Shown here: in pieces, positions 14,506 through 62,195 of the stretch | Layout: every line of letters begins with the position of its first letter | Position numbering within the stretch: the stretch's first letter is position 1 | Source: Callorhinchus milii | Lineage: Eukaryota | Direction: 5' to 3' | Length of the DNA stretch: 64,000 nucleotides | Assembly (NCBI RefSeq): GCF_018977255.1 | Contig: NW_024704755.1 | Location: 15,190,001 to 15,254,000 of the forward strand | Notes under the pieces: generated by a model | What the model was told of the DNA's origin: nothing | The model's input: the letters and a program-made list of their open reading frames with translations, nothing else | The model's database searches: none | Made by a program: the position numbers and the translations under genes

Positions 14506-14560
14506 ATGTTTGCGAGGAGCTCGGTTCATTGGGCATTCACCTTGGGGATGATTTACACAG
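14506..14560 (+). CDS. Gene A leader exon (MFARSSVHWAFTLGMIYT)
   Basis: ATG, 55 nt, phase-1 donor gtcagt; same length as the gene B leader; signal-peptide-like. Confidence 0.75.
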
Positions 14561-14858
14561 GTCAGTCCTTCCAAATGAAGCATTCAATAAATAGTTAAGT
14601 AAATAATTATTAAGAGCGACTCTATTAAATAATGATAATTCTCCAAACGATTGATTTGAGAATAAAGCATGGTCTCTGTAGGAATTGTATATGGATTTCT
14701 TATCGCCTCGTTGAGACGTCTCCAAGCGCTTCATAGGATACACTAAAGTGAATTAACGGTGCAGTTTGTGGGGAAACGCGGCAGCCAAATTGGTTTTAAT
14801 TATTAACTGTATTTATATTCGATGGTCTTTATATATTGATGTTTTCGGTTCTTCACAG

Positions 14859-15164
14859 TTGTTGGGGATACCTTAGTGAATCAACCACCTCGTCTGGAAA
14901 GTGAGAAAGGTGAACGCGTAATATTTTACTGCATCGTTCCCCTCGTTCGGGCAACAAATGCAATCAGGGTCCATTGGTGGAAAGACGATGATCATAACTT
15001 CTTAGACGCAAAGAAAGATTCCCGACAAATATTCAAAATTCCGAACAGGGCAAGTGCAACTTTTACGCTCGAGAGGTTGAGAGTGAGTGATGCGGGAGTC
15101 TATTACTGCAGAGTCCAGGGCGAGATCACTGGCAATGGAACAGGTACTACACTTCAGGTCTCTG
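14859..15164 (+). CDS. Gene A germline-joined VJ-type Ig V exon (..RVIFYC..VHWWKD..DAGVYYCRVQGEITGNGTGTTLQVS)
   Basis: cacag/gtgagt, phase 1-1; B-strand Cys, C-strand Trp, DxGxYxC, J-like GxGT-x-L-x-V in the same exon. Confidence 0.93.
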
Positions 15165-17472
15165 GTGAGTGTTACACACTTGGTAATCACACACTTTATT
15201 TGTAAAAATCTTCCGTTTTTTGCTGTTTTCTATTATGTATATATATACACACACATATTATATATATATGTACACATATGTTTATATATATCGTACACAT
15301 ACTTATGTGTATATAATTTACTTTCCAATAGTGGGTTGTCATCGTATCCACAACTCACTGAAAACAATTCAATTTATCTTCCAAAACGGATCTCGCAGCC
15401 CCAAAGACACCTCACATTTGATCGCATTTGGTAGCTATTTGCGCAAAAAAACATGTCACTGACGCTGCTGTTATTTCAGATAATTTTCTACCGTTTAACG
15501 ACTGAGCTGATCTGAGCCCTACAAAAAAATACATATGCAGGTGTGTGAGAAAGATTGCTCGTTGTACCTTATTGCACAACATTCGTTGCATTCGCCCACC
15601 AACCACACGTACCATATATACAAACGTGTTTCGAAATCGATTCTGTTTACGCATCTGAGGAGGTGAAAAGTTTTGAGAGATGATTTCAAAATCCACTGAA
15701 TCTGTACCGTTAAGAAGTGTCACAATAAGCATCAGAGAAATAGCAAACCCAGTAAAGCACGAGGAGCTATTTCTGTGTTCCCTTTACAAAGAGATATGCA
15801 TTAAAATTAAATTTAATAAATCTGGCTCTGAATGAACGAGAGGGGAAATCATTATTCTTACTACTCTCTTATTTTTATTTGAAATTAAATCAGATCCTTT
15901 ACCCTGTTATTTATTTGAAGGTTTTAACTTTTAACTCGGGTCAAACATAGTTTCAAATAATCACATTCACTTTAGTAGAACGGTCCCCTACTTTTGAGCT
16001 TTAGTTGATGTAAAACGATTTATTTCATTTGTATCAAAAAAAATCGCCCCGATCTCACTGCAACTAATTTAAAGGCAGGATTCAAAATACCTTGTGAATG
16101 TACTGTATAATCAGATACCACTAGGTATCCGAGTTAAGTAGTTTAACCTAAACAGAACATTTAAGATGATACTATTTACTAATAATAATCCTTGCATTTG
16201 ATACATTGCCTTTTAAGTCCAGAGGATGTCTCAAAAGCACTTCACAGGATTTTATCACAATAATAATGATTATACAGTACATTTTCATGTCAGCAGGACA
16301 TCTCAAAGTGCTTCACAAGATTTATTATAAATGTACTGACTGTGTATTTCATAGGAGAACGCACTTGTCAATTTGCACATATCGTGAAACAAACAATCAA
16401 TTTAACTGGAGGTTATCAGACAGAGCAGAAATTCATAATCATAATGCCTCCAAAAAGATTGTTGTCATCTAGTTAGTACAAGCAGTCTAAATTTCAACCC
16501 ACATAAAAAGTAAATCTGCCGAAATCTGAATTAAAACTGTTTGTGGGTCACTGCTGTGCACAATTAGCTGCAGCATTTTGCCCACAAAATACACAGTCAG
16601 CTGACTTCACAGTATATTATGTGAAGCATTTTGAGACGTCTGTTAACATTTATTTTAAATAAATGTAAAATCACGCCCCAAAGAAAAAGTGAAAGTTTGG
16701 GAAATTTTTACAACAAAAAGAATCAACATCCTAATTGCCTCTGTGGGAAATTCCTTTAAGTTTCCTTTCTCTTTAGGTAATGAGCTTAAATGTATGCAAA
16801 ATTTTAGACAATATTTATTATTGCCTTTAGTATTTAGTAACAGTTTACAGCTGCTGCAAACTTTTTTTGACAAACATTAATTTGTATAGTTTACACAGAT
16901 TGCACTTAACTTCGCTAGCATCATGCCCAACAAAGATCATTTTAATGGTATAATAGAGCTGGTGAGGTAGATGATGTTTGGAGATGATATGAGGAGTTTA
17001 TTGCATATGTGCAAATAATGATATAACAATCCTTGCATTTGGTACTACGCCTTTCTGTCAGGAGGACGTCTCAAAGTGGATGTTACAGAATTTTACTGCT
17101 AAATGGAGTGACTGAATTTTTCGACTAACACTGCAGCCCAATAGCACACAGCAAAGTCCCATAAACAGCCATAAAACACATGACTAATTTTATTTTGGAT
17201 TGTTGGCCAGAACGCCGGGAGAAGCTTCCTTTGTTGGTTGAGAAGTACTTTGAGATGTTTCTAAGTTATAGTACTTTGAGATGTTTCTAATAAACTTTAC
17301 GTTTATTCTTTCATAGATGAAGGGACTTTCTACCATTATCCTGGCACACAATGCTCCAGAGAACCAAAATGTCACTCTCTTCATGGTTGTTTGTGGGATA
17401 CTGCTGTGCATAAACCGGCTGCAAGATTTGCCTACAAATATCCGGTCACTACATTTCAGAGAAAATTCTGTG

Positions 17473-17533
17473 AATGATTATTTTTATGTGAAAGAGCACT
17501 AATACAGTGCACTTTCACATAAAAATAATCATT
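17473..17533. repeat. Inverted repeat: 22 bp perfect + 1 mismatch + 5 bp, 5-nt loop
   Basis: aatgattatttttatgtgaaag ... ctttcacataaaaataatcatt. Confidence 0.9.
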
Positions 17534-17832
17534 AGTATTATATTAGTATATTAATATAATATTATATTAGTGCCGTAGCCCCTTGGGACATCCTCACGAC
17601 TTGAAAGGCGCTTTACAAATGTAATTTTGTTGTTGTTGTATCAAGTGCAATTTTTTTTCATACTGTTTATGAACTTTCTGACTCAAACAAAAATGTTAAC
17701 ATAAGTAATAATGGAGTTATAAAATACGACAAAGTAAATTAGCATTGTGATACCCAGCAAAATATAATACAAAACACATTATTTTATGTTCAAAATGGAT
17801 AACTATTTTCTTGTTTGTTAACTTCTTTAAAG

Positions 17833-18126
17833 CTCCACCATCTGCTCCGAAGATTTTCTCCATGGGTTCATCGGATTCTCCAATATATGGGTGTACAACA
17901 ACTGGCTATTACCCCGATGACTTAAAAATGGAGTTCTTTAAAAACGACATTAAACTAACTGAGTTAAAAGAAGATAAACAACTGACAGCAGAAGGAGAGT
18001 ATAATTTTTCTAGTACTGTGGAAGAAAAAGAGCCTGTCCCGATTGGGACCACATATTCCTGTACGGTATCTCACCCCACCCTCAAAAATTCGCCTAAGGC
18101 GGTCAATTATACAGTCATTCCTGAAG
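17833..18126 (+). CDS. Gene A C1-set Ig exon (APPSAPKIF..YGCTTTGYYPDDLKMEF..YSCTVSHPTL..)
   Basis: taaag/gtaatg, phase 1-1; CxxxG(F/Y)YP and YxCxVxHxxL C1 motifs; the usual C-strand Trp is replaced by Phe. Confidence 0.92.
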
Positions 18127-18357
18127 GTAATGGAAACATATTGTTGGAAATACTATGATATTTTTATGATAGTACAAAGTACAATGCAATATTTCAATGA
18201 GACACCACAGCATTGCTGATGACAGACCGGCCAGTACTGGGGGCAGGGATTCTTCCCATACAGCTACTGTTAACCCTGTAAGCCAAAGCCCTAACAAGTA
18301 GGGTGTTACTAGCTGGAGCAACAGCAGGGAGCTTGCCAGAAAGTGCTTTCAATGGCA

Positions 18358-18387
<30 letters not shown>
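18358..18387. repeat. (TAT)10 microsatellite inside an old interspersed repeat
   Basis: Seen directly. Confidence 0.9.
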
Positions 18388-18388
<1 letters not shown>

Positions 18389-18536
18389 AGCAATGCGGTT
18401 TTAATTGGTTAAACTCCAGCAATCATCAATCCTTGGCTCTTGCCAACCTGTGCTTAATACTCTCCAGAATTCAATATTCAGGCTTTCAGTGTGATTTTAT
18501 ATATGAAAATAAATTAGCTTTATGTTTCCATTTCAG

Positions 18537-18641
18537 AAAAAGGACTTAATGACTCTTTTGCCTGGTGGATCTATGTCTGTGTAGGGGCTGGAGCTCTTCT
18601 TCTGCTGCTCCCGATAGTAATATGTGCCTGTAAATGCAGAA
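18537..18641 (+). CDS. Gene A transmembrane exon (EKGLNDSFAWWIYVCVGAGALLLLLPIVICACKCR)
   Basis: tttcag/gtaaga, phase 1-1; uncharged hydrophobic stretch followed by a basic, Cys-rich stop-transfer segment. Confidence 0.88.
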
Positions 18642-19303
18642 GTAAGAGTATTTCATTGACCATTATTAGATTTGTTTTAATAAGCATAATAACTTGCAAT
18701 TAATATAGTGCTTATAACAACAAAGCTGCTCAAATGTTTCACAGGCAATTGTTGGCAAGAAAAGGAACAGTTCAATTGTAGCTAAATATTTTGATTAAAC
18801 TCCAGCAGTCACCAAGCCTTGGCTCATGCTAACCTGTGCTTAATACTCTCCGGAATTTGGTACTCTGGATGGGTCACTCCAGGAAGAATTTTGCGCATAG
18901 CAAGGTTCACTTCAGTGAACGGCCAATTCATCTGTTGTTGCCCATGACAATGGGAAAAGCTCCCTTTCCTTTTTTGATTTGTGTCAGGAGAATCTTTCGT
19001 GGCCACCTGACCAGGTGGACAAGACCTCAGTTTAACATCTCACTGAAGGAAGGCACCTCCGATAATTCAGCACCCCCTCAGTACTTCATAGGGGTGTTAG
19101 CCCTGGACTATGATCTGAAGTTCAACTAACAATCTTCTGACCCAGTTAATCTGGTGTTTGGATCATGCCACAGCGCCAATTCTTACCAAAAGTATACAGG
19201 ATTGCACTACATAACAACATTCAATATTAAGTTCACTATCATTTATTTCCAGATCAACATTTTTTAAAGAAATTTGAATCACTAGTTTCTGTCTGCCTTG
19301 CAG

Positions 19304-19347
19304 AATCATCCACACGCACTGCTATTTCAAAGAAATATGACGTTTTT
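19304..19347 (+). CDS. Candidate gene A short cytoplasmic linker exon (KSSTRTAISKKYDVF); donor uncertain (19341, 19347 or 19353)
   Basis: Strong pyrimidine acceptor; a phase 1-0 exon of this size exists in B and C, but all available donors here are weak. Confidence 0.3.
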
Positions 19348-20296
19348 GTCCTGGTTTCCTGTCTTGCATTCCCTCCTCATCCAAATTCATTCCCCAAAGT
19401 CCCAAAATGAATCCTCTGCACTCCCGTTAGTTTTGCTTTGTGTATCAGGGTGGCTCAGTTGGTAGCACACTCACCTCTAAGTCAAGTGGTTGTGGGTTCA
19501 AGTGTCATGTTGGGGCTTTGAACTCACAACTCTTGGCTGACACTCCAGTGCATTGCTGGGGCTGGGCTGCATTGTTGAAGGTGCCATCATTTGGATGAGA
19601 TATTATCCACTGTCTGCCTGTTTATGTGGACATCAAACATCCCATACACTATTAAGCATTATTAAGAGCTTTGAGACGTCTCGAGGATGCGATAAGGCGC
19701 TATATCAAATGCAGGGATTATTAGTATATTATTCAAAAAGAGGAGCTTCTTCCTGTGTCCTGCCAACAATCTCTGTAATAAAATTGATGACTCACTTCAG
19801 CATTCGGAGCCACTAACCTGTCTGAAGGATGCTATATAAATGCAAGTTGTTGTGTTCATGGATGTTTGTGGGAGATTGCTGTGCACAATCTTTGGCTGCT
19901 GCATTCACTTACAAAATACAGTCACTACATTTTACAGTATATCTTGTGAAGCCTTTTGAGACATCTTCCCTACATGAAAGGCAATGATTCAAATGTAAGG
20001 ATTATGCTTTATTTAGTTTCCATGACAATGGAAGGTAAATGTGGAATTCTCAGTCTGGTTTGGAGCTTGTAAGTTTGTCTTTTCATTTGGTCAGCCAGGT
20101 ATCTGACACATGCAGAAACCATCCCTATGTTTAATAGTATCCAAACCAGACTGTGAGTTCCATGTGTCTAAGGCTGTAAAACCTTTTTTTAAATCTGCAA
20201 ACAGCATAAGAAGAGCTAATGGTTCTGGCTTATTCATATTATCAAAGTACAATTCTTTACATTTGTGATTCCAAAGTTTTTGCTATTTTCATACAG

Positions 20297-20499
20297 TTCG
20301 AGCCAAGAGACGTAAATCGGAGATCTGTGTACGTTGCTCTGGATTGAAAACGGCAAAACCCCAAAGCAAGAAAGAGGAAGCAGGCAGTCAAGTCACCCAG
20401 AAGCCAAAAACAAATGTGAACAAAGGAACAAAAGCTAAGAACAAAGCACCAAGAACCCAGAAGCACCGTACGAGAGATAAGGATGCCATCGTTGAATGA
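20297..20499 (+). CDS. Gene A terminal cytoplasmic exon: phase 0 gives FEPRDVNRRSVYVALD* (ITIM, stop at 20347); phase 1 gives a 66-codon basic Tyr-free tail (stop at 20499)
   Basis: catacag acceptor; Tyr at codon 12 as in the paralogous exons; ATTAAA at 20556-20561. Confidence 0.7.
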
Positions 20500-21039: not shown

Positions 21040-23654
21040 GTAGCTACAACTATATGAATATATTTTGAAGGTAGCTACAACTATTTGATGGACATTGCCG
21101 TGTGAAATTGGCTGCCGCGTTTGACTCACAAAATGATCAGTCACTACATTTTACAGTATATTCTGCGAAGTACTTTGGGATGTCTCGAAGATGTGATAAG
21201 GTGCTGTATTTTAATTTTAATTGTTTTTTAAAGGATTAATACCCCCAGAAAGTGATCTGCCAATTGACTAAAAAACGGGTTCCTACCTACTGCTAGGTAA
21301 ATAGAGGCATGTAGAGTAAATAAACTTGCCTAAGGTTTCGCCCCACCCGGGAATCGAACCCAGCTCCTCTCCTTGCGAGGCGAGTGCTCTAACCAATAAG
21401 CTGCAGGACTCCCACAAGTGCTGTATTTTATAGACAAATGTTGTAGCCAATTTGTGCACAGCAATATTCCACAAAAAGCCCTGAAATTAATGACCAATTT
21501 TATTTGGGAGATTGGTAACCAGTACACCAGGAAGAAATTCCTTTCTATTTTTGAATAATACCACATGATCTTTAATGTCCAATTTCACAGACAGATTAAC
21601 ATCTCATCTGAAGGTCTGCATTTCCAACAATGCAGCACGACCCCAACACTGCACTGTTTCGCTCTCTCGGGATTCAAATCCAGGTCTCTCGCTTCTGAGG
21701 CGAGTGCTCTGACCACTGAACTAGAGGATTGTATGTGCAGATACAACAAAAAAAAATCCTTGTGTTTGAAAAAGCACCTTTTACATTAGGAGGATATCTT
21801 ACTGCTGAATGAACAACTCAAAGCGATTAACACTGATGCTTCAATGCACTGTAAAGTGCAAAGGTTGTATTTTTTGGTTAATTTTGTGCACTATTAACTA
21901 TGTGGCCATAGAGGTAAATAGGTTAATACTGAAATATTATTTACTATTGAGTATTATTTAATACAGAGGTATTGTTTTTTTTGTATGTATATATTCCTAT
22001 GAGAATTACTTTTACAGCAAAGATGTTGTTTTTCCACTTTGATTCTTTTTACTATATATTGCGCAATTCAATGTTGCAATGTGTTTTGTTAAGATAACTA
22101 TCTCAGGGTAAGAGAGGAAATGATTGTTTTGCTTCTTGGGTCAAGCTTTGAATTTAGGCTGATTGATTGCAACACAATGGAAAAGTGGTCAATGGTCTTT
22201 GCGAGTGAGATCACGCTTCAGTCTGCTGCAACACTGTTGATGGACTTGAAAGAGATTTTGCACATAACAAAGGTCACAACAACATGTTTGCTCTCAGGCT
22301 GAACAGCAATTTTTATACCCGAAACACAGTATCAAGCGAAATGAGATATTGAGACGTGCAAAGATTTATAACAAATAGAGTTAGAGGGGATATTCAATGC
22401 AATATGCTAACTCTTTAAGTAAACACCTGTGGCACAAAGATATTTGTTAAATATTATGCATAAAACGAATTATAATGCTTATCGTTCTCACTTTTAATCT
22501 GATACTCAAAACCTATCTCTTTGACTGCGCTTTCCGCCAACTGTCCCCTCCCTACCTAATTTGGATCCCACCCTCAGCTTGGGTGCCAAATAGGTCCTGT
22601 TAATGGTTTGGGATGTCCTCCTTACTGGAAAGGCACTGTATTTCATACCAACAACGTTGCAAATTCTCAAAGCACTTCACAGGAAATAAAATGCTTCACA
22701 GGGGGTCATAGAGCCATCTCAAAATGCTTCATATACAAATGCTGTGAAGAGACTACATGTTTCTAGTCAATTACAGCAGCTAATTTGCACATAACAAGGT
22801 CCAAACAACATAACAACAAACAGCTATGAGGCAAATGACCATTTTATCTGAAGGACTGTTGTGCAGGACACTGAGAGAAGCTCTTCAAGTAGTGTGAAGG
22901 GCTCTTTAAAAATAATAATCCCTAGTCGTTTAATTTGATGTTGCACCTTATCACACCGACATATCTAAAGCCTTTCACAGGGGGATTTTTCTGTAAAGTG
23001 TACTGACTGTATTTGGAGGTCAATGTGACAGCTAAATTTGCACCCCAACATCCCAGAAATAGGCAGGAAATGAATAAATACATATTAGCCAGTACAATTG
23101 GAAGAAATTTCCTAAACTCTTTTAAAACAGTAGACATAGCAACTTATTTAGTAGTAATCCATTTAGTAGGCAGATGGGATTTTCGTTTTAAAGTCTCATC
23201 CAAAGAAGGGCACTTACAACAATTTAGTACTTCTCCGGCATTACATTCGAGTAAGAGCTCAAAGCCCTGACATCAGACATCAACCCGTGACCTTCTGATC
23301 CAGGGCCAAAAGTACTACTATCTAAGACAAGCTGAAACTTGTACCAAGTGTAGTGACTACTTTTGTAAACAAATGTAGCGGCCATGTTGGGCACAGCAAG
23401 ATTCTACAAAGAGCCATGAGAGAAAACAATAAACTTTGCTCTCGGAGTACTAATTGCCAATAAATCCACATTGATTTGACTAAATATCTGAAGCTAATCT
23501 ACTATTAAATATCTAGAGCCAATGATTTCCTGTAATGAGGCCTTCTTCCTACAAATTGCACTCCCTCCAAATATTTGCTACCAGTTTTAATTCTAAATAT
23601 TCAACTTTAAAATGCAGAAATGATTGAACCAATTTTGAGGTGTATTAGTTCAGG

Positions 23655-24107: not shown

Positions 24108-24426
24108 ATTAATAATAATAATCCTTGCATTTGATATAGCCCTTTTCACGTCAGGAGGACGTCCCAAAGCACTTTACAGAATACACTGTAAAGTGAATTG
24201 ACTGTATATTTGTGGGCGAACGCGGCAGCCAATTGCGCACAGCAATGTCCCACAAACAGTCGTGGATTGAAAGTGACCAATTTATTATTGTTTTGGGCTT
24301 TTGAGGGATTATTATTAGTCGTGTGGAGTAAGGAAAGGTTTTGCCCAAGGTTTTGCCCTGCCTGGAATTGAACTCAGGTCTCTCGCTTGCAAAGCGAGTG
24401 CTCTAACCACTGAGCTACAGGACTCC
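24108..24426 (-). mobile_element. Young full-length tRNA/Deu SINE
   Basis: Intact tRNA-Ala(TGC)-like head; near-identical to the copies at 38451, 41250 and 48465. Confidence 0.9.
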
Positions 24427-25109: not shown

Positions 25110-26600
25110 TAATCGGAATATAACGCTACTCTGCTGTCTGGCCTCATCACTGCTCTCCCTGGACCCATCACTGCTCTCAAACTACTCCCCCATCTCCAAC
25201 CTCCCTTTCCTCTCCATGGTCTGGAATGAGTTGTTGTTTCCCAGCTTCACTCCTTCCTCGCCCACTGCTGCCTTCACAAAACCCTCCAATAGGGTTTCCG
25301 TGCTGCCCACAGACAAGTGACAAATTACATTCTGTCTATCTGTAACCAGGCCTCACTCTGCCTCCTTGTCCTCCTTGACCTCTCTGCTGCCTTTGACCCG
25401 TTGACCACTCTATCCTCATCCACTACATCTCTTCTCACCTCAACCTTCACGGCTCTGTCCTTGGCTGGTTCAGATCTTACCTCTCACACCACCTGCAGTT
25501 CATCTCCACAAATGGTTTCTGCTCTTGTCCATCTTGTGCAACATTCCTCAGGGCTCTGTCCTTGGTCCCCTCTTCTTCAATATCTATATGCTCCCTCTTG
25601 GTGATATCATCCGCAGACATGGGGTCAACTTAGACGTGTATGTGGATGACATCCAACTCTACCACTCTGTCTCCATCTTTGACTCCAGGACCACTGTTGT
25701 CCTGACAGAATGTCTGTCAGACAACAAGTCCTGGATGGGAGCTAACTTTCTCCAGTTGACCAAGGCCCTCCTGCATTGCTCCAGTCAGCACCTCCATAAG
25801 TCAGACATGGACAGCATCACCATTCATGAATGCACTCTACACATCATGGAGCCAATACAGAACATTGGCATAATGTTCGATCCTCAACTGTCCTTCATTC
25901 CCCATATCCGTGCCATGATCCGCTCCACCTTTCCCCACCTCCACAACATCACCCGGCTCCCCCACAGTCTCACATCTCAGGCCACCGGAACCTTCATGCA
26001 TGCATTCATAACATCCAGGCTCGACTATGCAAACTCCTTGCTTGTCAGCCCCCCAAATCTTCACTCCATGGGCTGCAGATCATCCAGATCTCTGCAGCTC
26101 GTGTCCTCTCCCACACTAGGCTCTGTGGCCCTGTCACCCCCATTCTCGCCCGACTCCGCTGGCTTCCCATCACACAGGGGATACAGTTCAAGATCCTGTT
26201 CCTCACCTTCAAAGCCCTCCATGGTCTTGCTCCCCCCTACCTCTGCGACCTCCTCACCCCCGACCATCCTGCTTGCTCCCTCCGCTCCGTGGGCTCCGAC
26301 CTGCTCCACGTCCCCTGGCTTGCCTGCCCCACCATCGGCAGGCAAGCCTTTACCCACTCTACCCCCACCCTCTGGAATTCCATCCCGCAGTCCCTCCACC
26401 TCATGCCCCCCCGTACCTTGCCTCCTTGAAGACCCATTTCAAAACCCTCCTCTTTGACCGTGCTTTTGATCACTCTGATTTTCCCTCCTGCCCCTACCCT
26501 CCCCATTCGCACCCCCCTTGGGTCCGAAACATTGACTGTCCAGCACCTTTGGACGTCCTCCTGAAGTGAAAGGCACTATACAAATGTAATGTTGTTGTTG
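25110..26600 (+). mobile_element. 5'-truncated L2 LINE with RT remnant
   Basis: LVLLDLSAAFD, PQGSVLGPLFF.IYM, YVDDIQLY motifs; frameshifts; (TTG)n tail. Confidence 0.92.
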
Positions 26601-29229: not shown

Positions 29230-29270
29230 CGGATCTTCGCAATGCTGAGATTGCCTTTTTTTCTCTTTTC
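29230..29270 (-). CDS. Gene B cytoplasmic linker exon (GKEKKRQSQHCEDP)
   Basis: ttctag/gtatgt, phase 1-0; parallels the gene C linker ending KLEDQ. Confidence 0.8.
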
Positions 29271-30685: not shown

Positions 30686-30799
30686 CTCTACAGTTGTTGA
30701 ATTGACATTGTTTCCAAATGATGAAGAGTAGGACAAGAAATGCAAACCCAGCACCTCCACATCCAGAAATCCACAAGCAAAGGGGAATATCCTCACTGG
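30686..30799 (-). CDS. Gene B transmembrane exon (ASEDIPLCLWISGCGGAGFAFLVLLFIIWKQCQFNNCR)
   Basis: tttatag/gtaagt, phase 1-1, 114 nt; homologous to the gene C TM exon. Confidence 0.9.
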
Positions 30800-31169
30800 C
30801 TATAAAACCAAATATGAAATATAACATTTTTTTAACCTCAATAGTGGCCTGCACCACGACTTTGGCTCTTAAATTAGAATTCATCATTAAACAATGCAGC
30901 ATTGCAGCAGCACATGATAATCCCTCCAAAACCAAAAACAATAATAAATTGGTCATTTCCAATCTACGACTGTTTGTGGGACATTAATGTGCACAATTGG
31001 CTGCCGCGTTCGCCCACAAATATACAGTCAATTCACTTTACAGTGTGTTCTGTGAAGCGCTTTGGGATGTCCTCCCGACGTGAAAAGCGCTATATCAAAT
31101 GCAAGGATTATTATTATATTGTTATTAGGATCTAAGATATCTCCTTTCAATTTTTCACATGTAGCAATC

Positions 31170-32847: not shown

Positions 32848-33150
32848 CTTGTTTAGAAACAGGAACAGAGTAAATAGCGATGATTGGAGACTTGAGGCTT
32901 AGGTGAGATACCACACAGATGTAAACAGCCCCACTCCTCACGGGCTGTGTCTCTTCCAAGGAGCTCGAAACTTGATAACCTCTCCCATCTCTCCCAAGCT
33001 GCTTTCTTTTATTTACAGTGAAAACATTCTTATCATCTTTATACCAAGTGACACTGATATCCTCTGGGTAAAACCCATCCGTTTCACAAACTAGAGTCAG
33101 AGAAGTGGTCGAGTTCCCATCAGACACGATGTTAGGTTGCATCGGGGGAG
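32848..33150 (-). CDS. Gene B C1-set exon (APPMQPNI..TLVCETDGFYPEDISVTWYKD..YICVVSHLSLKSP..)
   Basis: cacag/gtacga, phase 1-1, open frame; canonical C1 motifs. Confidence 0.94.
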
Positions 33151-34174: not shown

Positions 34175-34489
34175 CATGAACAACCAGTGATGATCCAGTT
34201 CCATTTGTCATTCCTCTTCCTCGATATCTCACTCCACAGTAATAGGCTGCTGAGTCCTGGAGGTTGACACTCAGGAGCTGAAGGGAAGCTTCCCCACTCT
34301 GGGTAAGGAACCGTTTCCTGCTGTCTGAGCCCGGCTGGAGAAACTCATTCTCGCCCAGTTTCCACCACTCAACAGTCACAGCAGAATTATCAGAAGGGGA
34401 GAAAATGCATCTGAAGGTAACGTTGGCAGCTACGATCGCAATAGGGCTTTCAAGGGTTTGGGTCACTGTGAGGCGAGCATTGGCGGCAA
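34175..34489 (-). CDS. Gene B germline-joined VJ-type V exon (..NVTFRC..VEWWK..DSAAYYCGVRYRGRGMTNGTGSSLVVH)
   Basis: gacag/gtaagt, phase 1-1, open frame; Cys-Trp-Cys core and J-like GTG-x-x-L-V-V. Confidence 0.94.
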
Positions 34490-34573: not shown

Positions 34574-34628
34574 CTGTGCCAATAGTGAGAATTACTAGGT
34601 ACAGAAACACAATCTGTTTCAAAATCAT
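34574..34628 (-). CDS. Gene B leader exon (MILKQIVFLYLVILTIGT)
   Basis: ATG, hydrophobic core, phase-1 donor gtattt. Confidence 0.88.
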
Positions 34629-40082: not shown

Positions 40083-40247
40083 TTATGCGGTTCCTGACTC
40101 CATGAAAGTGCCATCTTCGTAGTTTCTGATCTTTACCTCGGAATACTCTGAATTCTTGTCGCTGTGTTTAGCTTTTCCTGTATTTTTGGAGCGAGGCAAA
40201 TCCAGAGCAGCGTATGTCAGCTTGTTAGCGGCTGCTCCTCGCTTGGT
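40083..40247 (-). CDS. Gene C last exon (TKRGAAANKLTYAALDL..NSEYSEVKI..*) with ITIM LTYAAL and SEYSEV
   Basis: ttttcag acceptor, phase 0, TAA at 40083-40085. Confidence 0.9.
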   Translation of the reverse strand, partial: TKRGAAANKLTYAALDLPRSKNTGKAKHSDKNSEYSEVKIRNYEDGTFMESGTA

Positions 40248-40949: not shown

Positions 40950-41093
40950 CTGTTCAATACAAGATTTCTCTATGCTGTGTACCTGGGCGTATACTGTCCT
41001 GTCTTCCTGATGTTTATTTCTTGGAGTTTTATTGGAACTTCTCAAATCCAATGTTACATAAGCCACGTTGTCACCCGCTGCTGCCTCCCCCGC
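40950..41093 (-). CDS. Gene C cytoplasmic exon (AGEAAAGDNVAYVTLDL..DRTVYAQ[VHSIEKSCIEQ]) with ITIM VAYVTL and ITSM TVYAQV; alternative donor at 40983
   Basis: ttttacag acceptor, phase 0; two in-phase donors. Confidence 0.85.
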
Positions 41094-41249: not shown

Positions 41250-41494
41250 ATAATAATAATAATAATAATCCTTGCATTTGATATAGCGCTTTTCATGTCG
41301 GGAGGACGTCCCAAAGTGCTTCACAGAAAACACTGTAAAGTGAATTGACTGTATATTTTTGTGGGCGAACGTGGCAGCCAATTGCGCACAGCAATGTCCC
41401 ACAAACAGTCGTGGATTGAAAATGACCAATTTATTATTGTTTTGTTTTTTGGAGGGATTATTATTAGGCGTGTGGAGTAAGGAAACTTGCCCAA
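41250..41494 (-). mobile_element. Young tRNA/Deu SINE, head truncated, in a gene C intron
   Basis: Near-identical core and tail. Confidence 0.88.
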
Positions 41495-42137: not shown

Positions 42138-42181
42138 CTGATCTTCAAGTTTGCCCAATTGAGTCAGGTTTCCCTTTGATC
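42138..42181 (-). CDS. Gene C cytoplasmic linker exon (GSKGNLTQLGKLEDQ)
   Basis: ttttag/gtaagt, phase 1-0. Confidence 0.85.
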
Positions 42182-42901: not shown

Positions 42902-43015
42902 CGTTTTTCTTTTTTAATTGGCATCGCTTCCCAATAATGATCACAAGCGCCAGAAATGCGAAACCACCCGCTGCACATCCAGCCCACAATAAATATCGGA
43001 TTACATTTTTACTGT
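42902..43015 (-). CDS. Gene C transmembrane exon (DSKNVIRYLLWAGCAAGGFAFLALVIIIGKRCQLKKKN)
   Basis: ctccag/gtaaga, phase 1-1, 114 nt. Confidence 0.92.
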
Positions 43016-44167: not shown

Positions 44168-44488
44168 CTGCTTTAGATTTTGGGAAAGCGAAGGTGGCAA
44201 TAGCTGAAGTCTTGAGGCTGATGTGAGACACCAGACAGTTATAAACAGATCCATTCTGGCCAGACTGTGTGACTTCGATAGAGCTCGAGGCCTTATAGAG
44301 ATCCTCTGAGTTCTGCTTCTCAGTGGAACCTGACTCTTCCAGCTTTATTTCTGGTGTTGGCACAATTTCGGTGCCATCTTTATACCAAGTGAAGGTGATT
44401 TCCTTTGGGTGAAACAAAGCAGTTTCACACACAAGAGTCTGAGGCTTAGGTGAATTCCTAGAGAAAATCTTCAGTGGAGTTGGGGGAA
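44168..44488 (-). CDS. Gene C C1-set exon (VPPTPLKIF..TLVCETALFHPKEITFTWYKDG..YNCLVSHISLKT..)
   Basis: ctgcag/gtaaga, phase 1-1, open frame; C1 motifs. Confidence 0.94.
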
Positions 44489-45092: not shown

Positions 45093-45413
45093 CGCACACA
45101 GTTAATCGCGATCCAGATCCTGTTCCGATTATTGATCCCTGACGGACCACTACACAGCGATAGACTCCAGAGTCCTGTGAAATCACATTCAAGAACTGGA
45201 AGAAGCTGCTTCCTTTAGTTTTTACACCAAATAGTTTCCTGTTATCCTCCTTTGTATCCAAATAGCCACTCTCACCCTTCTTATTCCACTGCACCTCCAC
45301 TTCTGAACCGTCTTGAGAGAAGGGGAAGATACAGCGGAAGGTAACATTTGTTCCTCTGATGGCAGCCACATGGTCGGGGATTTGAGTCACTTTCACGGAA
45401 GAATCGCCATCAA
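45093..45413 (-). CDS. Gene C germline-joined VJ-type V exon (..NVTFRC..VQWNK..DSGVYRCVVVRQGSIIGTGSGSRLTVC)
   Basis: tgacag/gtgagt, phase 1-1, open frame. Confidence 0.94.
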
Positions 45414-45576: not shown

Positions 45577-45628
45577 CTGTTGAAATAATGTGTAAGGCAG
45601 ACAGGTACAGGAAGACAACACTCCCCAT
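45577..45628 (-). CDS. Gene C leader exon (MGSVVFLYLSALHIIST)
   Basis: ATG, phase-1 donor gtatat; encodes the same peptide as the D leader. Confidence 0.88.
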
Positions 45629-47689: not shown

Positions 47690-48030
47690 GCGGAAATGGT
47701 CATAGTCATGGAGCCCTGGGTTGAGCAACAGGTCACTTACTTGGCATTTAAGGCTGATCAAACTTGAGCGCGTGAGAAACTGGGATTGTTCAATTGGAGA
47801 AAAGAAGAAGGGGTTATCTTCTTGGTGTTTTCCGAATACAAAGAGTATAAATAAACTGTCCTCAAATAATATGTTTGATGAAGAAAAAGAATGATGCAGA
47901 GGAAGGTGATATTTGTCTCTCTGATGGCAATCACACATTCTGGGATTAATGTTACTTTGACCGAAAAATTACTAATAAGTATTAGAAAAACAAAGACAGA
48001 TTGGTACAGTAACATAACATCCCCTCTCAT
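47690..48030 (-). pseudogene. Locus F: degenerate leader+V of the gene C type (MRGDVMLLYQSVFVFLILISNFSVKVTLIPECVIAIRETNITFLC..)
   Basis: Aligns to the C 5'UTR, leader and V start; C-strand Trp and second Cys lost; stop at 47758. Confidence 0.75.
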
Positions 48031-48464: not shown

Positions 48465-48797
48465 ATAATATTAATAATCCTTGCATTTGTTATAGCGCTT
48501 TTCACATCGGGAAGACGTCCCAAAGCGCTTCACAGAATATACTGTAAAGTGAATTGACTGTATATTTGTGGGCGAACGCGCAGCCAATTGCGCACAGCAA
48601 TGTCCCACAAACAGTCGTAGATTGAAAATGACCAATTTATTATTGTTTTTGGTTTTGGAGAGATTATTATTAGGCTCTGTGTGGAGTAAGGAAACTTGCC
48701 CAAGGTCTCACCCTCTGCCTGGAACTGAACTCAGGTCTCTCGCTTGCAAAGCGAGTGCTTAACCACTGAGCTACAGGACTCCACTGAGCTACAGGAC
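48465..48797 (-). mobile_element. Young full-length tRNA/Deu SINE with an 18-nt tandem duplication at its 5' end
   Basis: ccactgagctacaggact occurs twice. Confidence 0.9.
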
Positions 48798-50808: not shown

Positions 50809-51139
50809 GATGTTGAGTGATGGTTTGAGTACAAAATCGTGTTATCTGCCATTTTGATTCATATCAACAAGATTAAAAACTTAACGTTTACAATTTTATG
50901 CAGCTCTGCCTCATAGTGTTTCATTACATATATCATATTCTAACAAGATCTAGAGAAAATATAAAATAATGATTTAAATGTAAAAACAACAATCGCTAGA
51001 TGTGGTATTGTGCCTTTCAAGTCGGGAGGACATCTCAATCACAAGACAAATTGTAAAGGGTAGTGACTGTGTGTTTTGTCGTCGAATATGGCAGCCAATT
51101 TGCAAACAGCAATGATGCACAAACAGTCATGAAAAGAGT

Positions 51140-51340
51140 TGAGCGGATGATTGAGAGAAAGAGAAAGAGTGACTGAGGAGAGAGAAAGAGAGAGAGAGCG
51201 GAGGGAGCGGGGGAAAGAGAGATAGTGATGGAGAGAGAGTGTGCGCGAGTGATTGAGGGGAAAGAGAGAGAGTGATTTTGGAGAGAAAGAGGGGAGAGAG
51301 AGGGAAGAAAATTAGTGATTGAAAGAGAGAGAGAGAAATT
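51140..51340. repeat. GA-rich low-complexity repeat
   Basis: Seen directly. Confidence 0.85.
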
Positions 51341-55729: not shown

Positions 55730-56084
55730 CTGCCATACAATCCCGTGTCGGGTTTACAAACTGTGTCGCTGCGACTCCGGGAGTCCGGAGGTGCCGTGAG
55801 ATGTCAGACAGCAATAACCAGCCCCGCGCTGTCCCGGCGGTATCTCTTCTCTGTGGCTACAGAGCTCGAAACTTCATAAAGTCCCTTTGAATTCTTTCCT
55901 TTATTACAACGTATCCCCAATTTAACTTCACTGCCATCTTTATTCCAAGTGAGTTTGATATCTCCGGGTACAACCCACCCATATCACTCACAATGTGTTC
56001 ACGTCTTCTATTCGGAATAATTCGTTCAGTTTAGGGCAATAAACAGTTTGTGATATACCAGCCCCGGGGGGGGGGGGGGGGGGG
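55730..56084 (-). pseudogene. Decayed C1-set exon (GLYP/GDIKLTWNKDG..GLYEVSSSV..YCCLTSH..LRTPG)
   Basis: tttgtag acceptor; C1 motifs across frameshifts; 19-nt G run at the start; probable donor reads GA instead of GT. Confidence 0.8.
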
Positions 56085-56633: not shown

Positions 56634-57846
56634 ATTGGATTGTCAGTGACATTGGGGTAATCGCAATAAATGCATTCAGGATGGAATAAAATCTTGGGTA
56701 AACATTCTGGTTACGGCGCTATTGAGGGATATAAATGTTTGAAAGCGTTGTTAACTTTAGACATTGATGTATACATTTGATTGATACTATTTTAATGTAC
56801 GTATTAAGCACAATAACTGGTTTAAATATTATATCTAATCTCAAGCTGTGTATTTATTTATTGAAATCAGAATGAAAATTACGAGGAAATCAGAACTGAA
56901 AACACTTTGATATTTTGTAGCTTAAGATAGGTGTAGCTAATGACATCTGATCACATTTATTGTTATGATTACTGTTGGTTTTAATACACGGACGAAGGTG
57001 ACACACGGGAAACCAAAACGGACACCTGATATTCAGAGGAAACCCACAAAATAAAATCCATAATTTGTAGAGTAAGACGGCTGTACCTATTGATATATGA
57101 TTGCAGCGATGAATCATACTCACTTGTTATTAATAAAAGGAGGGAACATTATGGGATGGAAAGTCATTTTGTGATCAAGTGTATTGTGCTAACACCAAGG
57201 GTTTTGAAAATGATGCGGGTTTAGGAGCTCCCACTGAGATGATATCGGTGAGGCTGAACAAAACGTTTGGTGATTCACATCAAATGTTTCACTTTCAAAC
57301 AGTATAATGCAGTTGATCATCACCATGCACAGCCCACTCACCACCATTCACCGTACCCGTGGCTCCCATCAAGTCTCGCACCGCTTCCTCTCCCCTCAGT
57401 ACCCCCAGACCCGCAGTCACATTCCATCCCTCAAGTCATGGGTAGTTGCTGCTAAACATTGTATGTTCCTCAGGGCTCTAATCTCGATCCTCACTATCTA
57501 TATGCTCCCAGTTGTTGATACCATCCGTAGAATGTCGACATTTATAATTATGAAACCCAACTCTCCCATCTTCCCCCACACTCGACCTCCACCTTCGACC
57601 CGATTGGTCTCAGGCGTCAAGTTCTTGATGAGCTCTGACATTCTTCAGCTGAATAATAATTATCCTTGCATTTCATATAGTGACATACATATCAAATTCA
57701 AGGATTAATATTATTATGATTATTAACTCATTATTGTCATCTCAGATCACTTCAGACAATTTATTATATGAATTAATGCAACTGAACATTCGGATGAGAA
57801 TTCAGTTGACAACAGTTGACTTTTTAAAAATCTTTCAGTACCTTAC

Positions 57847-58158
57847 CTGCTTTAGGTTTTGGGATTGTGTACATGGTGATAGCTGAAGTCTTGAGGCTGA
57901 CGCGAGAAACTTGACAGGTGTAAACAGACTCTATCTGTGCATCTTCAATAGAGCTCGAGGCCTTATAGAGATCCTCTGAGTTCTGCTTCTCACTGGAACC
58001 TCTCTTTTCCAGCTTTATTTCTGTTGTTGGCGCAATTTTGGTGCCATCTTTATACCAAGTGAAGGTGATTTCCCTTGGGTGAAACAAGGCAGTTTCACAA
58101 AAAAGAGACTGAGACATAGATGAATTCCTAGAGAAAATCTTCAGTGGAGTTGGGGGAA
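57847..58158 (-). CDS. Locus D C1-set exon, intact paralog of the gene C C1
   Basis: Open frame, intact ctgcag/gtaagg sites, near-identical to 44168-44488 with a net 9-nt deletion. Confidence 0.8.
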
Positions 58159-58725
58159 CTGCAGAACAGATAATGGAGAAGAATCGTATTAATTTTGGTC
58201 AATGGGCAGGACAAACCTGATTTTGACTTTATTTTGATTTGTATCTGACACATTTCGTTGCAAACTCCTGAATTCTGAGTGCAAATGGAGGTTTGTTTAC
58301 ATACACAAATATCCCTTTCACAGCAGCATTGGCCTTCCTCCTGCTTTAAATACATTGTGGTTTTATCAAGTAATATTTATTCATAGCCTTTATCTTGCAT
58401 TTCATTACTAACTTTGATGATTGGCAGGTGGAAATGATCACTAAGAAATGCCTATTCAATATGTTGAACTGTCAAACAGAGGAGATAGAGGATTCCTGGC
58501 AGAGGTGTGCACACTGTGTTAGTGTAGCTCAGTTGATTGTATTCTGGCCTTTGTGTTAGAATTTCTCTTCTACTGACCGCTGCCGAACGATGGTGATAAA
58601 ATAATCATTGCATTTGAATGTAATGCTATATTGTCATTTGTATTGTTTGTTCATTAATAACTTTTGCATTCCAGTTTTTAGAATGATTTGAGACATCTCC
58701 AAAATGTGGTAAGGCACATTTTGGA

Positions 58726-58781
58726 GATGGCAGCCACATGGTCGGGGATTTGAGTCACTTTCACCGAAGAATCGCCATCAA
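58726..58781 (-). pseudogene. Locus D truncated V exon (VDGDSSVKVTQIPDHVAAI only)
   Basis: Matches the first 56 nt of the C V exon; the remainder, including both Cys and the donor, is deleted. Confidence 0.9.
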
Positions 58782-58944
58782 CTGTCAGAAAATAAAGTCA
58801 AACACTAATTTCTCAGATGATGAGCCAGTGAGAAAACAAATGAGTAAAAGAGGAGAAAACGTAAACGTATAAGTTAAATGTCACATGGAAACAAGTTTGC
58901 ACATATTTCATAGAAGAACTGAATTATAGAATGAACATATATAC

Positions 58945-58996
58945 CTGTTGAAATAATATGTAAGGCCGACAGGTAGAGGAAGACAACACTCCCCAT
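58945..58996 (-). CDS. Locus D leader exon (MGSVVFLYLSALHIIST), intact
   Basis: Paralog of 45577-45628; donor intact. Confidence 0.75.
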
Positions 58997-59561: not shown

Positions 59562-60250
59562 GGTCACAGGAGGTTTTGAACATTCTTGGCAATTGGGTGG
59601 ATCGGTGGCAGATGAACTTCAATGTGGAGACATGTAAAGTACTTCACAGATGGACAAAAAATCTGTAAGGGAAATGGAAAGGACCTGGGGTTCCTGATTG
59701 ACAGTACCTTGAAGCTCTCCCAACAATACTCAGTGGCATTGAGTGAAGCAAACCAGTTGTTGATATGTATGAAAAGGTCAATATGAAGTGGAAATCCTGC
59801 CACTGTATAAATCAGTGGTGAGATCATACTTAGCGTACTGTGTACAGCTCGGGTCACCGCAGTACAAAAAAGATATTAGAGAAATCGAGAAGAGACAGAA
59901 GAGGGCAACAAAAATGATTGAGCGAATGGAGGGACTTGACTATGAGGAGTGACTAAGTAAATTGTACATGTTCATGCTGGGTAAGAGAAGATTGAGAGGT
60001 GATATGATTGGTGTCTTTAACAGTCTAAAGGGGAAGACAATATAGATCAGGACAGGCTGTGGAACAGGCTCCCTTGGGAGACTGTTGAAGCAGGAAATGT
60101 TGATCCTTTCAAACACAGATTAGATAGTTTTCTTTTTTTTCTTTAACATTATGGGACATCGCATATATGTAGTTCAGGACATATGTGCATGCGATCACCA
60201 GGAAGGTGGAAGGCGAACCAGATGGACCTTGGTCTTTTTCCGTCTAGCAT
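59562..60250 (+). mobile_element. CR1 LINE 3' fragment at the D/E junction
   Basis: WQMNFNV.TCKVLH..DLGFLID motifs; 3' part is paralogous to 31170-31720. Confidence 0.88.
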
Positions 60251-61182
60251 CTTTTATTTTCTTATATACAATGGTAGCAATGAATCTACGCGTCAAACCA
60301 AGTTGTTTATCGGATGAGGAGATTTATTTTGAATCCAATGCGGGGGAAGAGGGATAGGAGGAATGCGATTTCTAATATGAATCATCATAATTTGAATTTA
60401 TTAAATTAGTTTAAATTAATCCCACAGAATATGCACATTGGGCAGATTGCTTTCTTTGTAATTGTTTACCTGTTGCAGTGTTAGCACTCTGGCCTCTGAG
60501 TCACAACATTGTGGGTTCAAGCTCCAGGTTGCTTGAGAATCTCAACCAAGCTGAGATTTCCATGCTTCCTACCAACACACGGAAATCCCTGAGATTGATT
60601 GTTGGAGTGGAATGTGCACTCTCAGAGTATGCATTGGGTTAAATGCTGAATTCTAATCAACTAAAACCACATAACTTGCCATTGATATTGCTGTCTGGCC
60701 AGCTTTCTCGCTGCTCTTCCATCTAAGATGACATTCTATTGCCAGGAATATCACCTTGGAGTCAGTTCAGCTCTAAGGATACCCTGTTTAGAAGGTGTTG
60801 CATTGTTAGAGTTGGCATTCTTCAGATGAGATGTTAAACCAAGTTTCCATCTGCCTGTTCATTTGGCTGTTGAAGATTAGTGGCATATTTGAAAAGAGAA
60901 TGGAGTTTCTCTCAGTGTCCTGACCATCTTCCAATGGCAATGCAACACACCACTTAGTGAGGTCTCCTTGGAGCTGAACTGGCCTCAATATGACATGCCT
61001 GGCAGTGGAATGTCGGAATCGTGTCCGCCCTCGGTGGAAGCCTCGTTAGTCCGGTTCCTGATCCAGGCGGGTTCTCAGTATTCCAGGCCACTGCTCACCC
61101 CAGTATTGCACTGAATTGAGCCTAGGCTGTTAGCCCAAAGGTTCAATAGACATCTATACTTAGAGAAATAAAACAATCATAC

Positions 61183-62195
61183 CTTGTTTAGCATCAGATA
61201 CAGGGTAAATCGCGATATTGGAGTCTTGAGGCATATGTGAGATACCAGACAGGTGTAAACAGCCCTACTCCAGACAGGTTGTATCTCTTCCAAGGAGCTT
61301 GAAGCATTATAAACTCTCCCATCTCTCCCAAGTTGCTTGCTTGTATTGACAAACAAATCATTTTTATCATCTTTATACCAAGTGGCAATGATATCCTCTG
61401 GGTAAACACTGCTGTGCTGCCTCATTTCACTCACAAAGTATGCAGTCAATTCACTTGACAGTATATTCTGTGAAGCAGTTTCAGACGTCTCAAAGATGAG
61501 ATTAGGCAATATACCAAATGCAAAGATTATTATTATTATTAAATATTATTATTATTATTTAGGGAATTTCATTTACATTAACACTAAAAGATATAGTGCA
61601 ATAATAAATGCAGATTGGCTGCAAATACTTATGATATTTAATTTATGCTGCGGTATTGAAAAAAAGTAGGATTGAAGACCCCTGTCATCTGGTTATTTAA
61701 GTTGAGATATATGTGGAAGAATAGGAGCCGTCACTTACTTACCATGGATAAGTGGTTATGATCCAGTTCCATTTGTAATTTCTCTTCTTCGATATGTCAC
61801 TGCACAGTAATAGGCTCCTGAGTCCTGGAGGTTGACACTAAGGAACTGCAAGAAAGCTTTCCCACTCTGGGTAAGGTATCATTTCCTGCTGTCTGAGCCC
61901 GGCTGGAGAAATTCATTCTCGCCCAGTTTCCACCATTCAACAGTCACACCAGAATTATCAGAAGGGGATAAAAAGTATCTGAAGGTAACATTGGCAGCTA
62001 CGATCACAGTAGAGCTTTCAGGGGTTCGGTCACTGTGAGGTGAGCAATGGTAACAACTATCAAAGATGAATACAATCCTTATGTTAAGTGTATGTAACAA
62101 AAATATAGAAAATATGGATTGAGAAAACAATATCAAATACCTGTGCGAATGGTGAGAATTACAAGCTACAGAAACACAATATGTTTCAAAATCAT
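61183..62195 (-). pseudogene. Locus E: pseudogene copy of gene B (leader 62141-62195, V 61743-62056, partial C1 61183-61407)
   Basis: TAG at leader codon 10; 1-nt deletion plus TGA (61879) and TAA in V; 5' part of C1 and its acceptor deleted; no TM exon found. Confidence 0.93.

Follow-up and report, generated by a model that had tools for sequence, protein, structure and literature searches.

We report here that a 64,000-nucleotide stretch of elephant-shark (Callorhinchus milii) genomic DNA (the window; scaffold MU249845.1, GCA_018977255.1, ~15.19-15.25 Mb, with window coordinates given by the record coordinate minus 15,189,997) contains three intact V(J)-C1-transmembrane (TM) genes, here called A, B and C, together with four decayed copies of such genes. 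Taken as a whole, the likely explanation of our data is that the window is the OGFOD1-proximal end of a tandem array of germline-joined V(J)-C1-TM receptor genes of the immunoglobulin (Ig) superfamily (IgSF), and that gene C would be an inhibitory receptor of the SIRP-alpha type, with orthology to SIRP not established. An original prediction made from the DNA letters had proposed an array of non-rearranging V-J-C1 receptors in a probable cartilaginous fish, forming a paired inhibitory, non-signalling and activating family. The array and the cartilaginous-fish origin are borne out, and of the paired family we recover the member with immunoreceptor tyrosine-based inhibitory motifs (ITIMs), gene C, and the tail-less member, gene B; no activating arm was found in the window, and gene A does not belong to a paired set.

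Three genes share one exon per domain and a germline-joined V

Six open frames were recognised by Pfam as V-set and C1-set domains. When genes A, B and C were rebuilt exon by exon, AG/GT was found at every junction and phase 1 at the end of all leader, V, C1 and TM exons, in agreement with the predicted open leader-V-C1-TM frames and shared phase-1 structure, and since each domain occupies one phase-1 exon, domains can be skipped or shuffled whole and in frame. The V exons of all three genes are uninterrupted, running through YYC and a J-like G.G(T/S)..L.V strand into the splice donor, and the G.G..L.V motif is invariant in the family and lies inside the V exon. Sites resembling the heptamer-spacer-nonamer of recombination signal sequences (RSS) numbered 1 in the window against 1.15 expected, with 0 at the V end. 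Because the V domain and its J-like strand are held in a single exon and RSS-like signals are at chance level, we conclude that the genes are non-rearranging, as had been proposed. The V signature [FY]L-x4-D-[SN]-R noted in the original prediction is present in A, B and C, and it recurs in the family consensus WWKxGExxFLxxKxDxRK. Each of the three genes has one C1 exon, as do nearly all family proteins, so that the V-C1-C1 layout of SIRPs is not found in A, B or C, and the TM cores of all three are free of charged residues.

Gene C encodes a receptor with two ITIM/ITSM pairs

Gene C lies on the minus strand (45,628-40,083) and has seven exons encoding 375 aa, one of the two lengths (375 or 386) that had been suggested for it. 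The leader MGSVVFLYLSALHIIST (exon 1, 45577..45628) is followed by a V domain with a J-like strand (..YRCVVVRQGSIIGTGSGSRLTVC) and a terminal unpaired Cys (exon 2, 45093..45413; Pfam V-set), a C1-set domain (exon 3, 44168..44488; Pfam C1-set), a stalk and TM segment (YLLWAGCAAGGFAFLALVIIIGKRCQLKKKN; exon 4, 42902..43015; residues 231-263 form a helix in the AlphaFold2 (AF2) model) and a juxtamembrane spacer (GSKGNLTQLGKLEDQ; exon 5, 42138..42181; an exact match to NCBI isoform P0002). The tail is encoded by exon 6 (40983..41093; tail profile 52 bits), with a first pair of an ITIM and an immunoreceptor tyrosine-based switch motif (ITSM), VAYVTL and TVYAQT, set 23 residues apart, and by exon 7 (40083..40247; tail profile 65 bits), with a second pair, LTYAAL and SEYSEV, likewise 23 residues apart, and the stop codon; the four tyrosine motifs claimed for gene C are thus all present. 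The C1 exon is skipped in P0002, and gene C without this exon is identical to P0002 residue for residue, which provides independent support for five of the six gene C junctions. In the AF2 model two Ig domains are predicted with confidence, and they are followed by a TM helix and a tail that is disordered.

A profile built from the TM and tail only was searched against 1.84 billion representative proteins and returned 82 significant matches, among them ~40 chondrichthyan clusters. After the chondrichthyans came the tails of tetrapod SIRP-alpha (bat, other mammals and corvids, with E from 2e-8), which are collinear with the family from the TM to the fourth Tyr, and a lungfish SIRP-alpha-like protein was matched as well. 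The same search recovered many teleost multi-Ig receptors with the same Lys-rich ITIM/ITSM cassette, which suggests that the tail common to teleost receptors, SIRP-alpha and this family could be an ancient module spread by exon shuffling. Of the 69 family proteins that were classified by TM and tail, 55 have a TM and 47 of these 55 an ITIM-type tail. Run on full-length family proteins, Pfam and NCBIfam returned generic Ig families only, plus the SHP2-interacting adaptor family SIT (Pfam) below threshold; SIT just passes on the SIRP-alpha tail and is sub-threshold on one family tail.

By the mechanism that we envisage for gene C, its membrane-distal VJ-type V domain would bind ligand, Src-family kinases would phosphorylate the two tandem ITIM/ITSM pairs, the tandem SH2 domains of SHP-1/SHP-2 would then dock on the tail, and activation of the leukocyte bearing the receptor would be damped.

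Two further observations concern gene C and its tail. The extra unpaired Cys of C-type V domains (..LTVC|VPP; 45093-45095, the last full codon) is common to P0007, P0013 and P0014 and is replaced by His or other residues elsewhere in the family; placed at the V/C1 junction, it might form an interchain disulfide. The teleost proteins bearing the tail cassette are P0070, P0088, P0093, P0096, P0097, P0108, P0110 and P0111.

Gene B belongs to an old lineage, with no tail exon found in the elephant shark

Gene B (minus strand, 34,628-30,686) comprises a leader MILKQIVFLYLVILTIGT (exon 1, 34574..34628), a V domain with a J-like strand (..YYCGVRYRGRGMTNGTGSSLVVH; exon 2, 34175..34489; Pfam V-set, AG/GT), a C1-set domain (exon 3, 32848..33150; Pfam C1-set E=2.5e-14, AG/GT) and a stalk with TM (..LWISGCGGAGFAFLVLLFIIWKQCQFNNCR; exon 4, 30686..30799; tblastn E about 6e-7, TM+tail profile 28 bits, E=3e-7). 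These exons give 262 codons, or ~280 aa if the TM exon is read through, and the leader-V-C1-TM layout proposed for a 279-aa product stands. The TM exon ends in the consensus donor AGAG|GTAAGT. The GenBank/NCBI call is a 231-aa leader-V-C1 product that stops by read-through after C1. No tail exon was found for gene B in the window by tblastn or by the TM+tail profile run on six-frame translations, in keeping with the claim that B had lost the tyrosine motifs. A marginal profile match at 21,957-22,067 was considered as its tail and rejected as noise.

The best match of gene B is P0012 of the sevengill shark Heptranchias, which has a complete ITIM tail and is paired with gene B in the tree at 89/91 support, and a tail is also present on the B-like P0076 of Mustelus. 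These tailed shark relatives argue that gene B is an old lineage whose tail was lost in the chimaera lineage. With its tail exons gone, gene B of the elephant shark could act as a non-signalling or decoy receptor, or it could be a decaying gene. Gene B also aligns end to end with Ig light chains. A reverse-transcriptase fragment of a long interspersed nuclear element (LINE; 25317-26570, described below) sits in the 10-kb gap where gene B tail exons would be expected.

Gene A is a separate lineage with a tyrosine-free tail

Gene A spans 14,506-20,499 on the plus strand; its five exons encode 320 aa, as had been estimated, and its translation equals UniProt/NCBI protein P0016 bar one residue. 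The leader MFARSSVHWAFTLGMIYT (exon 1, 14506..14560; ATG, GT donor, phase 1) matches P0016/P0021 and is followed by the V domain with its J-like strand (..YYCRVQGEITGNGTGTTLQVS; exon 2, 14859..15164; Pfam V-set, AG/GT, phase 1), the C1-set domain (exon 3, 17833..18126; Pfam C1-set E=5.5e-8, AG/GT), the stalk and TM (FAWWIYVCVGAGALLLLLPIVICACKCR; exon 4, 18537..18641), the TM being conserved in elasmobranch orthologues, and a Tyr-free basic tail with stop (IRAKRRKSEICVRCS...KDAIVE; exon 5, 20297..20499), which completes the five-exon coding sequence of 320 aa. NCBI isoform P0021 corresponds to gene A with the TM exon skipped in frame, and this TM-less product is probably a secreted form.

Over its full length gene A is closest to the elasmobranch proteins P0026/P0024/P0028, with 37-46% identity, while its C. 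milii paralogues reach 33% at most, and the match includes the TM (PWWIY.C...) and the Cys/Lys-rich, Tyr-free tail (..CVRCS..KKHRKK..). Since these elasmobranch matches exceed those to the C. milii paralogues, gene A represents an old lineage. It is no part of a paired set and forms an old lineage of its own, in which a basic tail without Tyr is conserved, and this tail would make a ligand or adhesion-type molecule a more likely role than that of an ITIM receptor, although we put this forward as speculation. In Heptranchias, P0107 (L007, CM068652.1, 19.0 Mb) joins an A-type TM (PWWIYVC) to a tail that does contain tyrosine (MVYTAIDF); 14.5 Mb separate it from the B-type P0012 of the same chromosome, which indicates that the family is dispersed in this shark.

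The family is widespread in chondrichthyans and turns over quickly

The full-length profile found members in chimaera, in hexanchiform, heterodontiform and orectolobiform sharks, and in skates, rays and sawfish, as the original prediction had proposed to check, and the tail search extends this range to the carcharhiniform shark Mustelus. Further C. milii copies occur 3-22 kb past the right edge of the window, at 15.48 Mb and at 15.55 Mb, so that the cluster runs from 15.20 to at least 15.56 Mb and measures at least 360 kb. NCBI automatic names for the family include SIRP-alpha-like, SIRP-beta-1-like, tapasin-related-like, NCR3LG1-like, NCR3-like, Ig lambda-1 light chain-like and T-cell receptor (TCR) beta chain-like, a spread that points to the lack of a clear mammalian counterpart.

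Sequence comparison indicates that gene C belongs to a chimaera-specific expansion. A C-like copy ~40 kb upstream of gene C, outside the window (L006 10218-10535, 11143-11460), has a V exon identical to that of gene C at 318/318 in-frame nucleotides and a C1 exon that differs at 6/318, which implies a very recent duplication or gene conversion, or possibly a duplication in the assembly. Between recent C-like copies the ratio of nonsynonymous to synonymous substitution is 0.3-0.8 on small counts, and positive selection is not demonstrated. With its pseudogene fragments and recent copies the array would be evolving by birth and death.

A single one of the 69 family proteins is activating-like, namely skate P0029 (Leucoraja), whose TM contains an Arg and whose tail is 13 residues long. 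In its ectodomain it is near-identical to P0011 from another skate (Amblyraja), which is of the ITIM type with a long tail, and these two proteins are the one sign of activating/inhibitory pairing that the family offers. P0011 itself is V-C1-C1 with two near-identical C1 domains, which may reflect a recent exon duplication or an artefact of the gene model. Among other public models, P0001 (L006, 489 aa) and P0005 (460 aa) fuse adjacent units (V-C1-V-C1-tail) or place tail exons in front of another gene, and automatic annotation of the cluster is thus unreliable.

Remnants and the candidate Arg-TM exon

Remnants D, E and F of the original prediction are real, but E and F are not separate, being the V and C1 of one B-like pseudogene, and two further fragments were found at 48.0 kb and 55.9 kb. 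All lie on the minus strand. The fragment at 47851..48024 (tblastn) is a pseudogene remnant of a C-like V exon, of which only the first ~30 codons are left, and that at 55763..55974 (tblastn) is a remnant of a partial C1 exon resembling P0004/P0006. Remnant D consists of an intact leader exon (58945..58996) whose peptide is identical to the gene C leader, a V exon truncated after about 20 codons (58681..58781; tblastn) and a C1 exon (57827..58162; tblastn) with an open frame in which a conserved His is changed to Arg (CQVSRVSL); no TM or tail was found downstream of this C1. The B-like pseudogene E/F (61192..62195; tblastn) has a stop codon in its leader (~62141-62195), two in-frame stops and a Cys to Tyr change in its V (61702-62076), and a C1 (61192-61419) with a disrupted 5' part.

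We found no place for the Arg-TM exon that had been proposed downstream of D. The candidate, SLFLFLSII[R]STLFMTVCASLLF (51080..51200, minus strand), consists of CT-rich simple sequence abutting a dispersed repeat and is similar to none of the family TM exons, and we reject it. Hydropathy scans allowing one basic residue, tblastn with family TM/tail segments and the six-frame TM+tail profile found no counterpart with a charged TM and a short tail in the window, the only hydrophobic stretch with an embedded Arg being the repeat and simple sequence at ~51.1 kb. The window therefore gives no evidence of an activating partner.

Locus and repeats

The only non-Ig neighbour in view is OGFOD1 (2-oxoglutarate/iron-dependent oxygenase), whose last exons lie on the plus strand at 1830-2196, 2769-3002 and 5901-6128 (PDB 4nhx, E=6.5e-45) and whose 3' end is ~8 kb upstream of gene A. 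OGFOD1 is thus the flank of the cluster in view, the other end of which is at least 360 kb away on a scaffold of 18 Mb. In human, OGFOD1 maps to 16q13 and the SIRP locus to 20p13. In Hemiscyllium and Heptranchias the 10 kb around family genes contain no OGFOD1.

Much of the window outside OGFOD1 and the receptor genes is occupied by LINE fragments and a dispersed short repeat. Two LINE reverse-transcriptase fragments (8839-10688 and 25317-26570, plus strand; Pfam RVT_1) lie in GC-rich, strongly skewed stretches. A repeat of ~150 bp, resembling a short interspersed nuclear element (SINE), is present in at least 10 copies at 71-81% identity (e.g. 41257-41413, 30968-31100, 24110-24264, 19855-19983 and 48485-48616), and its translation yields recurrent pseudo-open reading frames as well as part of the false Arg-TM candidate.

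Domain affinities form a mosaic

Whole-chain profile rankings against PDB are uninformative on the nearest family, because multi-domain proteins (titin, Ig heavy chains) accumulate score, and affinities were scored with single domains against the family V and C1 profiles, using human references verified against PDB plus database sequences. Family members themselves score 80-135 bits per domain. On the V profile, Ig light chain reached about 53-54 bits, bird PD-L1 39, NKp30 33, SIRP-alpha d1 22-26 and B7-H6 10-12 (over a partial stretch). On the C1 profile, B7-H6 was the best outside match with 60-63 bits, followed by Ig-lambda C with 51 (partial), UrIg2 with 48 (partial), SIRP-alpha C1 domains from lungfish to human with 29-47 and bird PD-L1 with 17-18; NKp30 has no C domain. 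In pairwise alignments A, B and C are all 24-31% identical to SIRP-alpha, B7-H6 and PD-L1, and the best pairwise alignment of full-length gene C is to SIRP-alpha, through the TM and tail.

In a Foldseek search with the AF2 model of gene C, TCR-beta and Ig light chains ranked top by E-value, with a poor global fit (TM-score 0.35-0.45), and the best two-domain superposition was to B7-H6 (TM-score 0.68, root-mean-square deviation 5.0 Å). The antigen-receptor-like shape that had been proposed is seen in the Foldseek ranking, and also in the score of about 53-54 bits of Ig light-chain V on the V profile. A maximum-likelihood tree of V+C1 with human SIRP-alpha and B7-H6, a comparison that the original prediction had called for, paired gene B with P0012 and resolved no deep nodes, and its outgroup branches are very long. 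A reciprocal SIRP-alpha profile search was saturated by mammalian and avian SIRP-alpha and was uninformative on sharks. The affinities are a mosaic, in which the V is nearest to Ig light-chain and NKp30 V, the C1 is nearest to B7-H6 C, and the TM and tail are collinear with tetrapod SIRP-alpha.

Alternative explanations

The reading that we favour, of a germline-joined array with gene C as a SIRP-alpha-type inhibitory receptor, has to be weighed against others. The family could comprise the cartilaginous-fish co-orthologues of SIRP-alpha/beta/gamma, with one C1 in place of two and a rearranged chromosomal position, a possibility that we take seriously and nevertheless find doubtful. It would account for the VJ-type V plus C1 layout, for a TM and four-Tyr tail collinear with bat, bird and lungfish SIRP-alpha, for the best alignment of full-length gene C being to SIRP-alpha with TM and tail included, and for the many members that NCBI names SIRP-alpha-like, with skate P0011 being V-C1-C1. 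However, the V of SIRP-alpha d1 (22-26 bits) falls below NKp30 (33), PD-L1 (39) and Ig light chain (about 53-54), SIRP C1 (29-47 bits) falls below B7-H6 C (60-63), and the flank is OGFOD1, on human 16q13, and not a neighbour from 20p13. Moreover, the tail cassette also occurs on unrelated teleost receptors, the tree resolves no affinity, and the near-identical C1 pair of P0011 may stem from a recent duplication of the exon or from a faulty gene model. We think it unlikely that the family, or at least the gene A lineage, is the counterpart of B7-H6 (NCR3LG1), a ligand for NKp30-type receptors: the family V is of the VJ type and the V of B7-H6 scores only 10-12 bits against it, most members have long ITIM/ITSM tails, and interdomain geometry in AF2 models is weak evidence, even though B7-H6 C is the top outside C1 (60-63 bits), the superposition reaches a TM-score of 0.68 (5.0 Å) against 0.35-0.45 for TCR/Ig chains, several members are named NCR3LG1-like by NCBI and the gene A tail is short, basic and without Tyr motifs. 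B7H6 and NKp30 are reportedly present from sharks to mammals (Flajnik et al. 2012), and that work may have treated some members of the family as shark B7H6.

The array could also be read along the lines of the original prediction, as a paired inhibitory, non-signalling and activating family that represents a non-rearranging survivor related to the V-J-C1 chain into which the RAG (recombination-activating gene) transposon inserted, and this we consider distinctly improbable. As to pairing, the Arg-TM and 13-residue tail of skate P0029, on an ectodomain near-identical to that of ITIM-type P0011, are set against an Arg-TM exon in the window that is repeat and simple sequence and against a single activating-like protein in 69. 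The germline V-J-C1 layout, the top Foldseek E-values of TCR-beta and Ig light chains, the end-to-end alignment of Ig light chains with gene B and the rank of Ig light-chain V as the top single outside domain would fit a relic of the time before RAG; yet the tree resolves no Ig/TCR link, no marker of the major histocompatibility complex (MHC) or antigen-receptor complex is in view, the neighbour being OGFOD1 (shark NCR3 genes, by contrast, adjoin AIF1/PRRC2A), and other VJ-C1 relics (SIRP, UrIg, UrIg2 and PRARP) are already known. The link to a pre-RAG ancestor has no specific support here, the data speaking neither for it nor against it. There is also a small chance that this unnamed VJ-C1 family is a sister of SIRP or its ancestral one-C1 prototype (with the tail shuffled later), and/or a non-rearranging relative of Ig/TCR chains outside the MHC and the Ig/TCR complex, and if so it would add an independent data point to the reconstruction of the pre-RAG receptor.

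Several points weigh against our favoured explanation, a germline-joined array with gene C as an inhibitory receptor. The tail cassette on unrelated multi-Ig teleost receptors means that the tail argues for an SHP-recruiting inhibitory function and not for family membership, and the inhibitory mechanism proposed for gene C is argued from its motifs and by analogy with SIRP-alpha and further ITIM receptors. The role suggested for gene A is speculative, and the tail loss of gene B could in principle be an assembly or annotation gap, though the window contains zero runs of N. Finally, we found no published description of the family in the literature searched, whose reach omitted key papers on B7H6/NKp30, shark NCR3, the primordial complex and PRARP.

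Significance

Public automatic annotations already include the genes, and the idea of a non-rearranging VJ-C1 receptor bearing ITIMs is not new; the family itself is apparently undescribed. Non-rearranging VJ-C1 genes such as SIRP, NKp30, UrIg and PRARP are material for inferring the precursor of antigen receptors before the RAG transposon, and of all lineages that have Ig/TCR the cartilaginous fish are the oldest. A group-wide family that has a minimal V-J-C1-TM layout together with a SIRP-alpha-type tail, and whose locus is so far not tied to MHC paralogons, would be a useful comparator for such reconstructions, and it would offer a first way into the study of ITIM-based inhibitory signals in chimaeras and sharks. 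It also carries a warning for annotation, as a single family goes under at least six unrelated automatic names. If the family has already been treated as shark B7H6 or SIRP, the finding shrinks to a well-resolved gene map.

Comparison with known systems

In sequence or architecture the family differs in one or more features from SIRP, B7-H6, NKp30, UrIg and Ig/TCR, which together made up the comparison, PRARP sequences lying outside it. PRARP are reportedly non-rearranging IgSF genes of the chicken (Fu et al. 2019). Lists of joined-VJ genes in the UrIg papers (PMC12227049, PMC10751288) and in a survey of 2024 (PMC11599192) name CD79, NITR, SIRP, CD8, NKp30, PRARP and UrIg, and do not mention the elephant-shark family. 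UrIg and UrIg2 (Flajnik et al. 2023, 2025) likewise come from cartilaginous fish and combine a split leader, a VJ domain held in a single exon and C1 domains. They are, however, antibody-like, have several C1 domains (nine in nurse shark UrIg2) and are linked to the MHC or the Ig/TCR complex (PMC12227049), whereas the elephant-shark family has one C1, a TM and ITIM tails.

NKp30 (NCR3) shares with the family a non-rearranging VJ-type V and a similar F-G region (YxCRV...G.G.GT.L.V), and it is the second-best outside V match among the locally scored references (33 bits). Human NKp30 has no C1 domain, carries an Arg in its TM and is activating; with a C1 exon and an uncharged TM core, genes A, B and C differ from this architecture. 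White shark NCR3 genes adjoin AIF1/PRRC2A of MHC class III (PMC10751288 supplement), whereas the elephant-shark family adjoins OGFOD1. B7-H6 (NCR3LG1) has the same V-C1 ectodomain and gives the best outside C1 match and the best predicted two-domain superposition, but its V is not of the VJ type and it acts as a ligand, while ITIM/ITSM receptor tails are found on most family members.

Ig light and TCR chains have in common with the family the V-J-C1 order, the top Foldseek E-values and, for light chains, end-to-end alignments; they differ in that the V and J of the family are contiguous in the germline without RSS, and in that the family has its own TM and signalling tail. The SIRP family (SIRP-alpha, also called SHPS-1/PTPNS1, and its relatives) differs in having two C1 domains where there is one here, and the V and C1 of the elephant-shark family are no closer to SIRP than to other families; moreover, the family adjoins OGFOD1, and the window has no charged-TM member of the SIRP-beta kind. 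What the two share is an N-terminal VJ-type V followed by C1-set and a single-pass TM, and a cluster of several genes with tail-less members that resemble SIRP-gamma. They also share a four-Tyr tail with two ITIM/ITSM pairs ([IL]TYA[AD]L[DN]. ... [ST]EY[AS]..), the tyrosines within a pair being 23 and 23 residues apart in gene C and 24 and 26 in SIRP-alpha (P0074).

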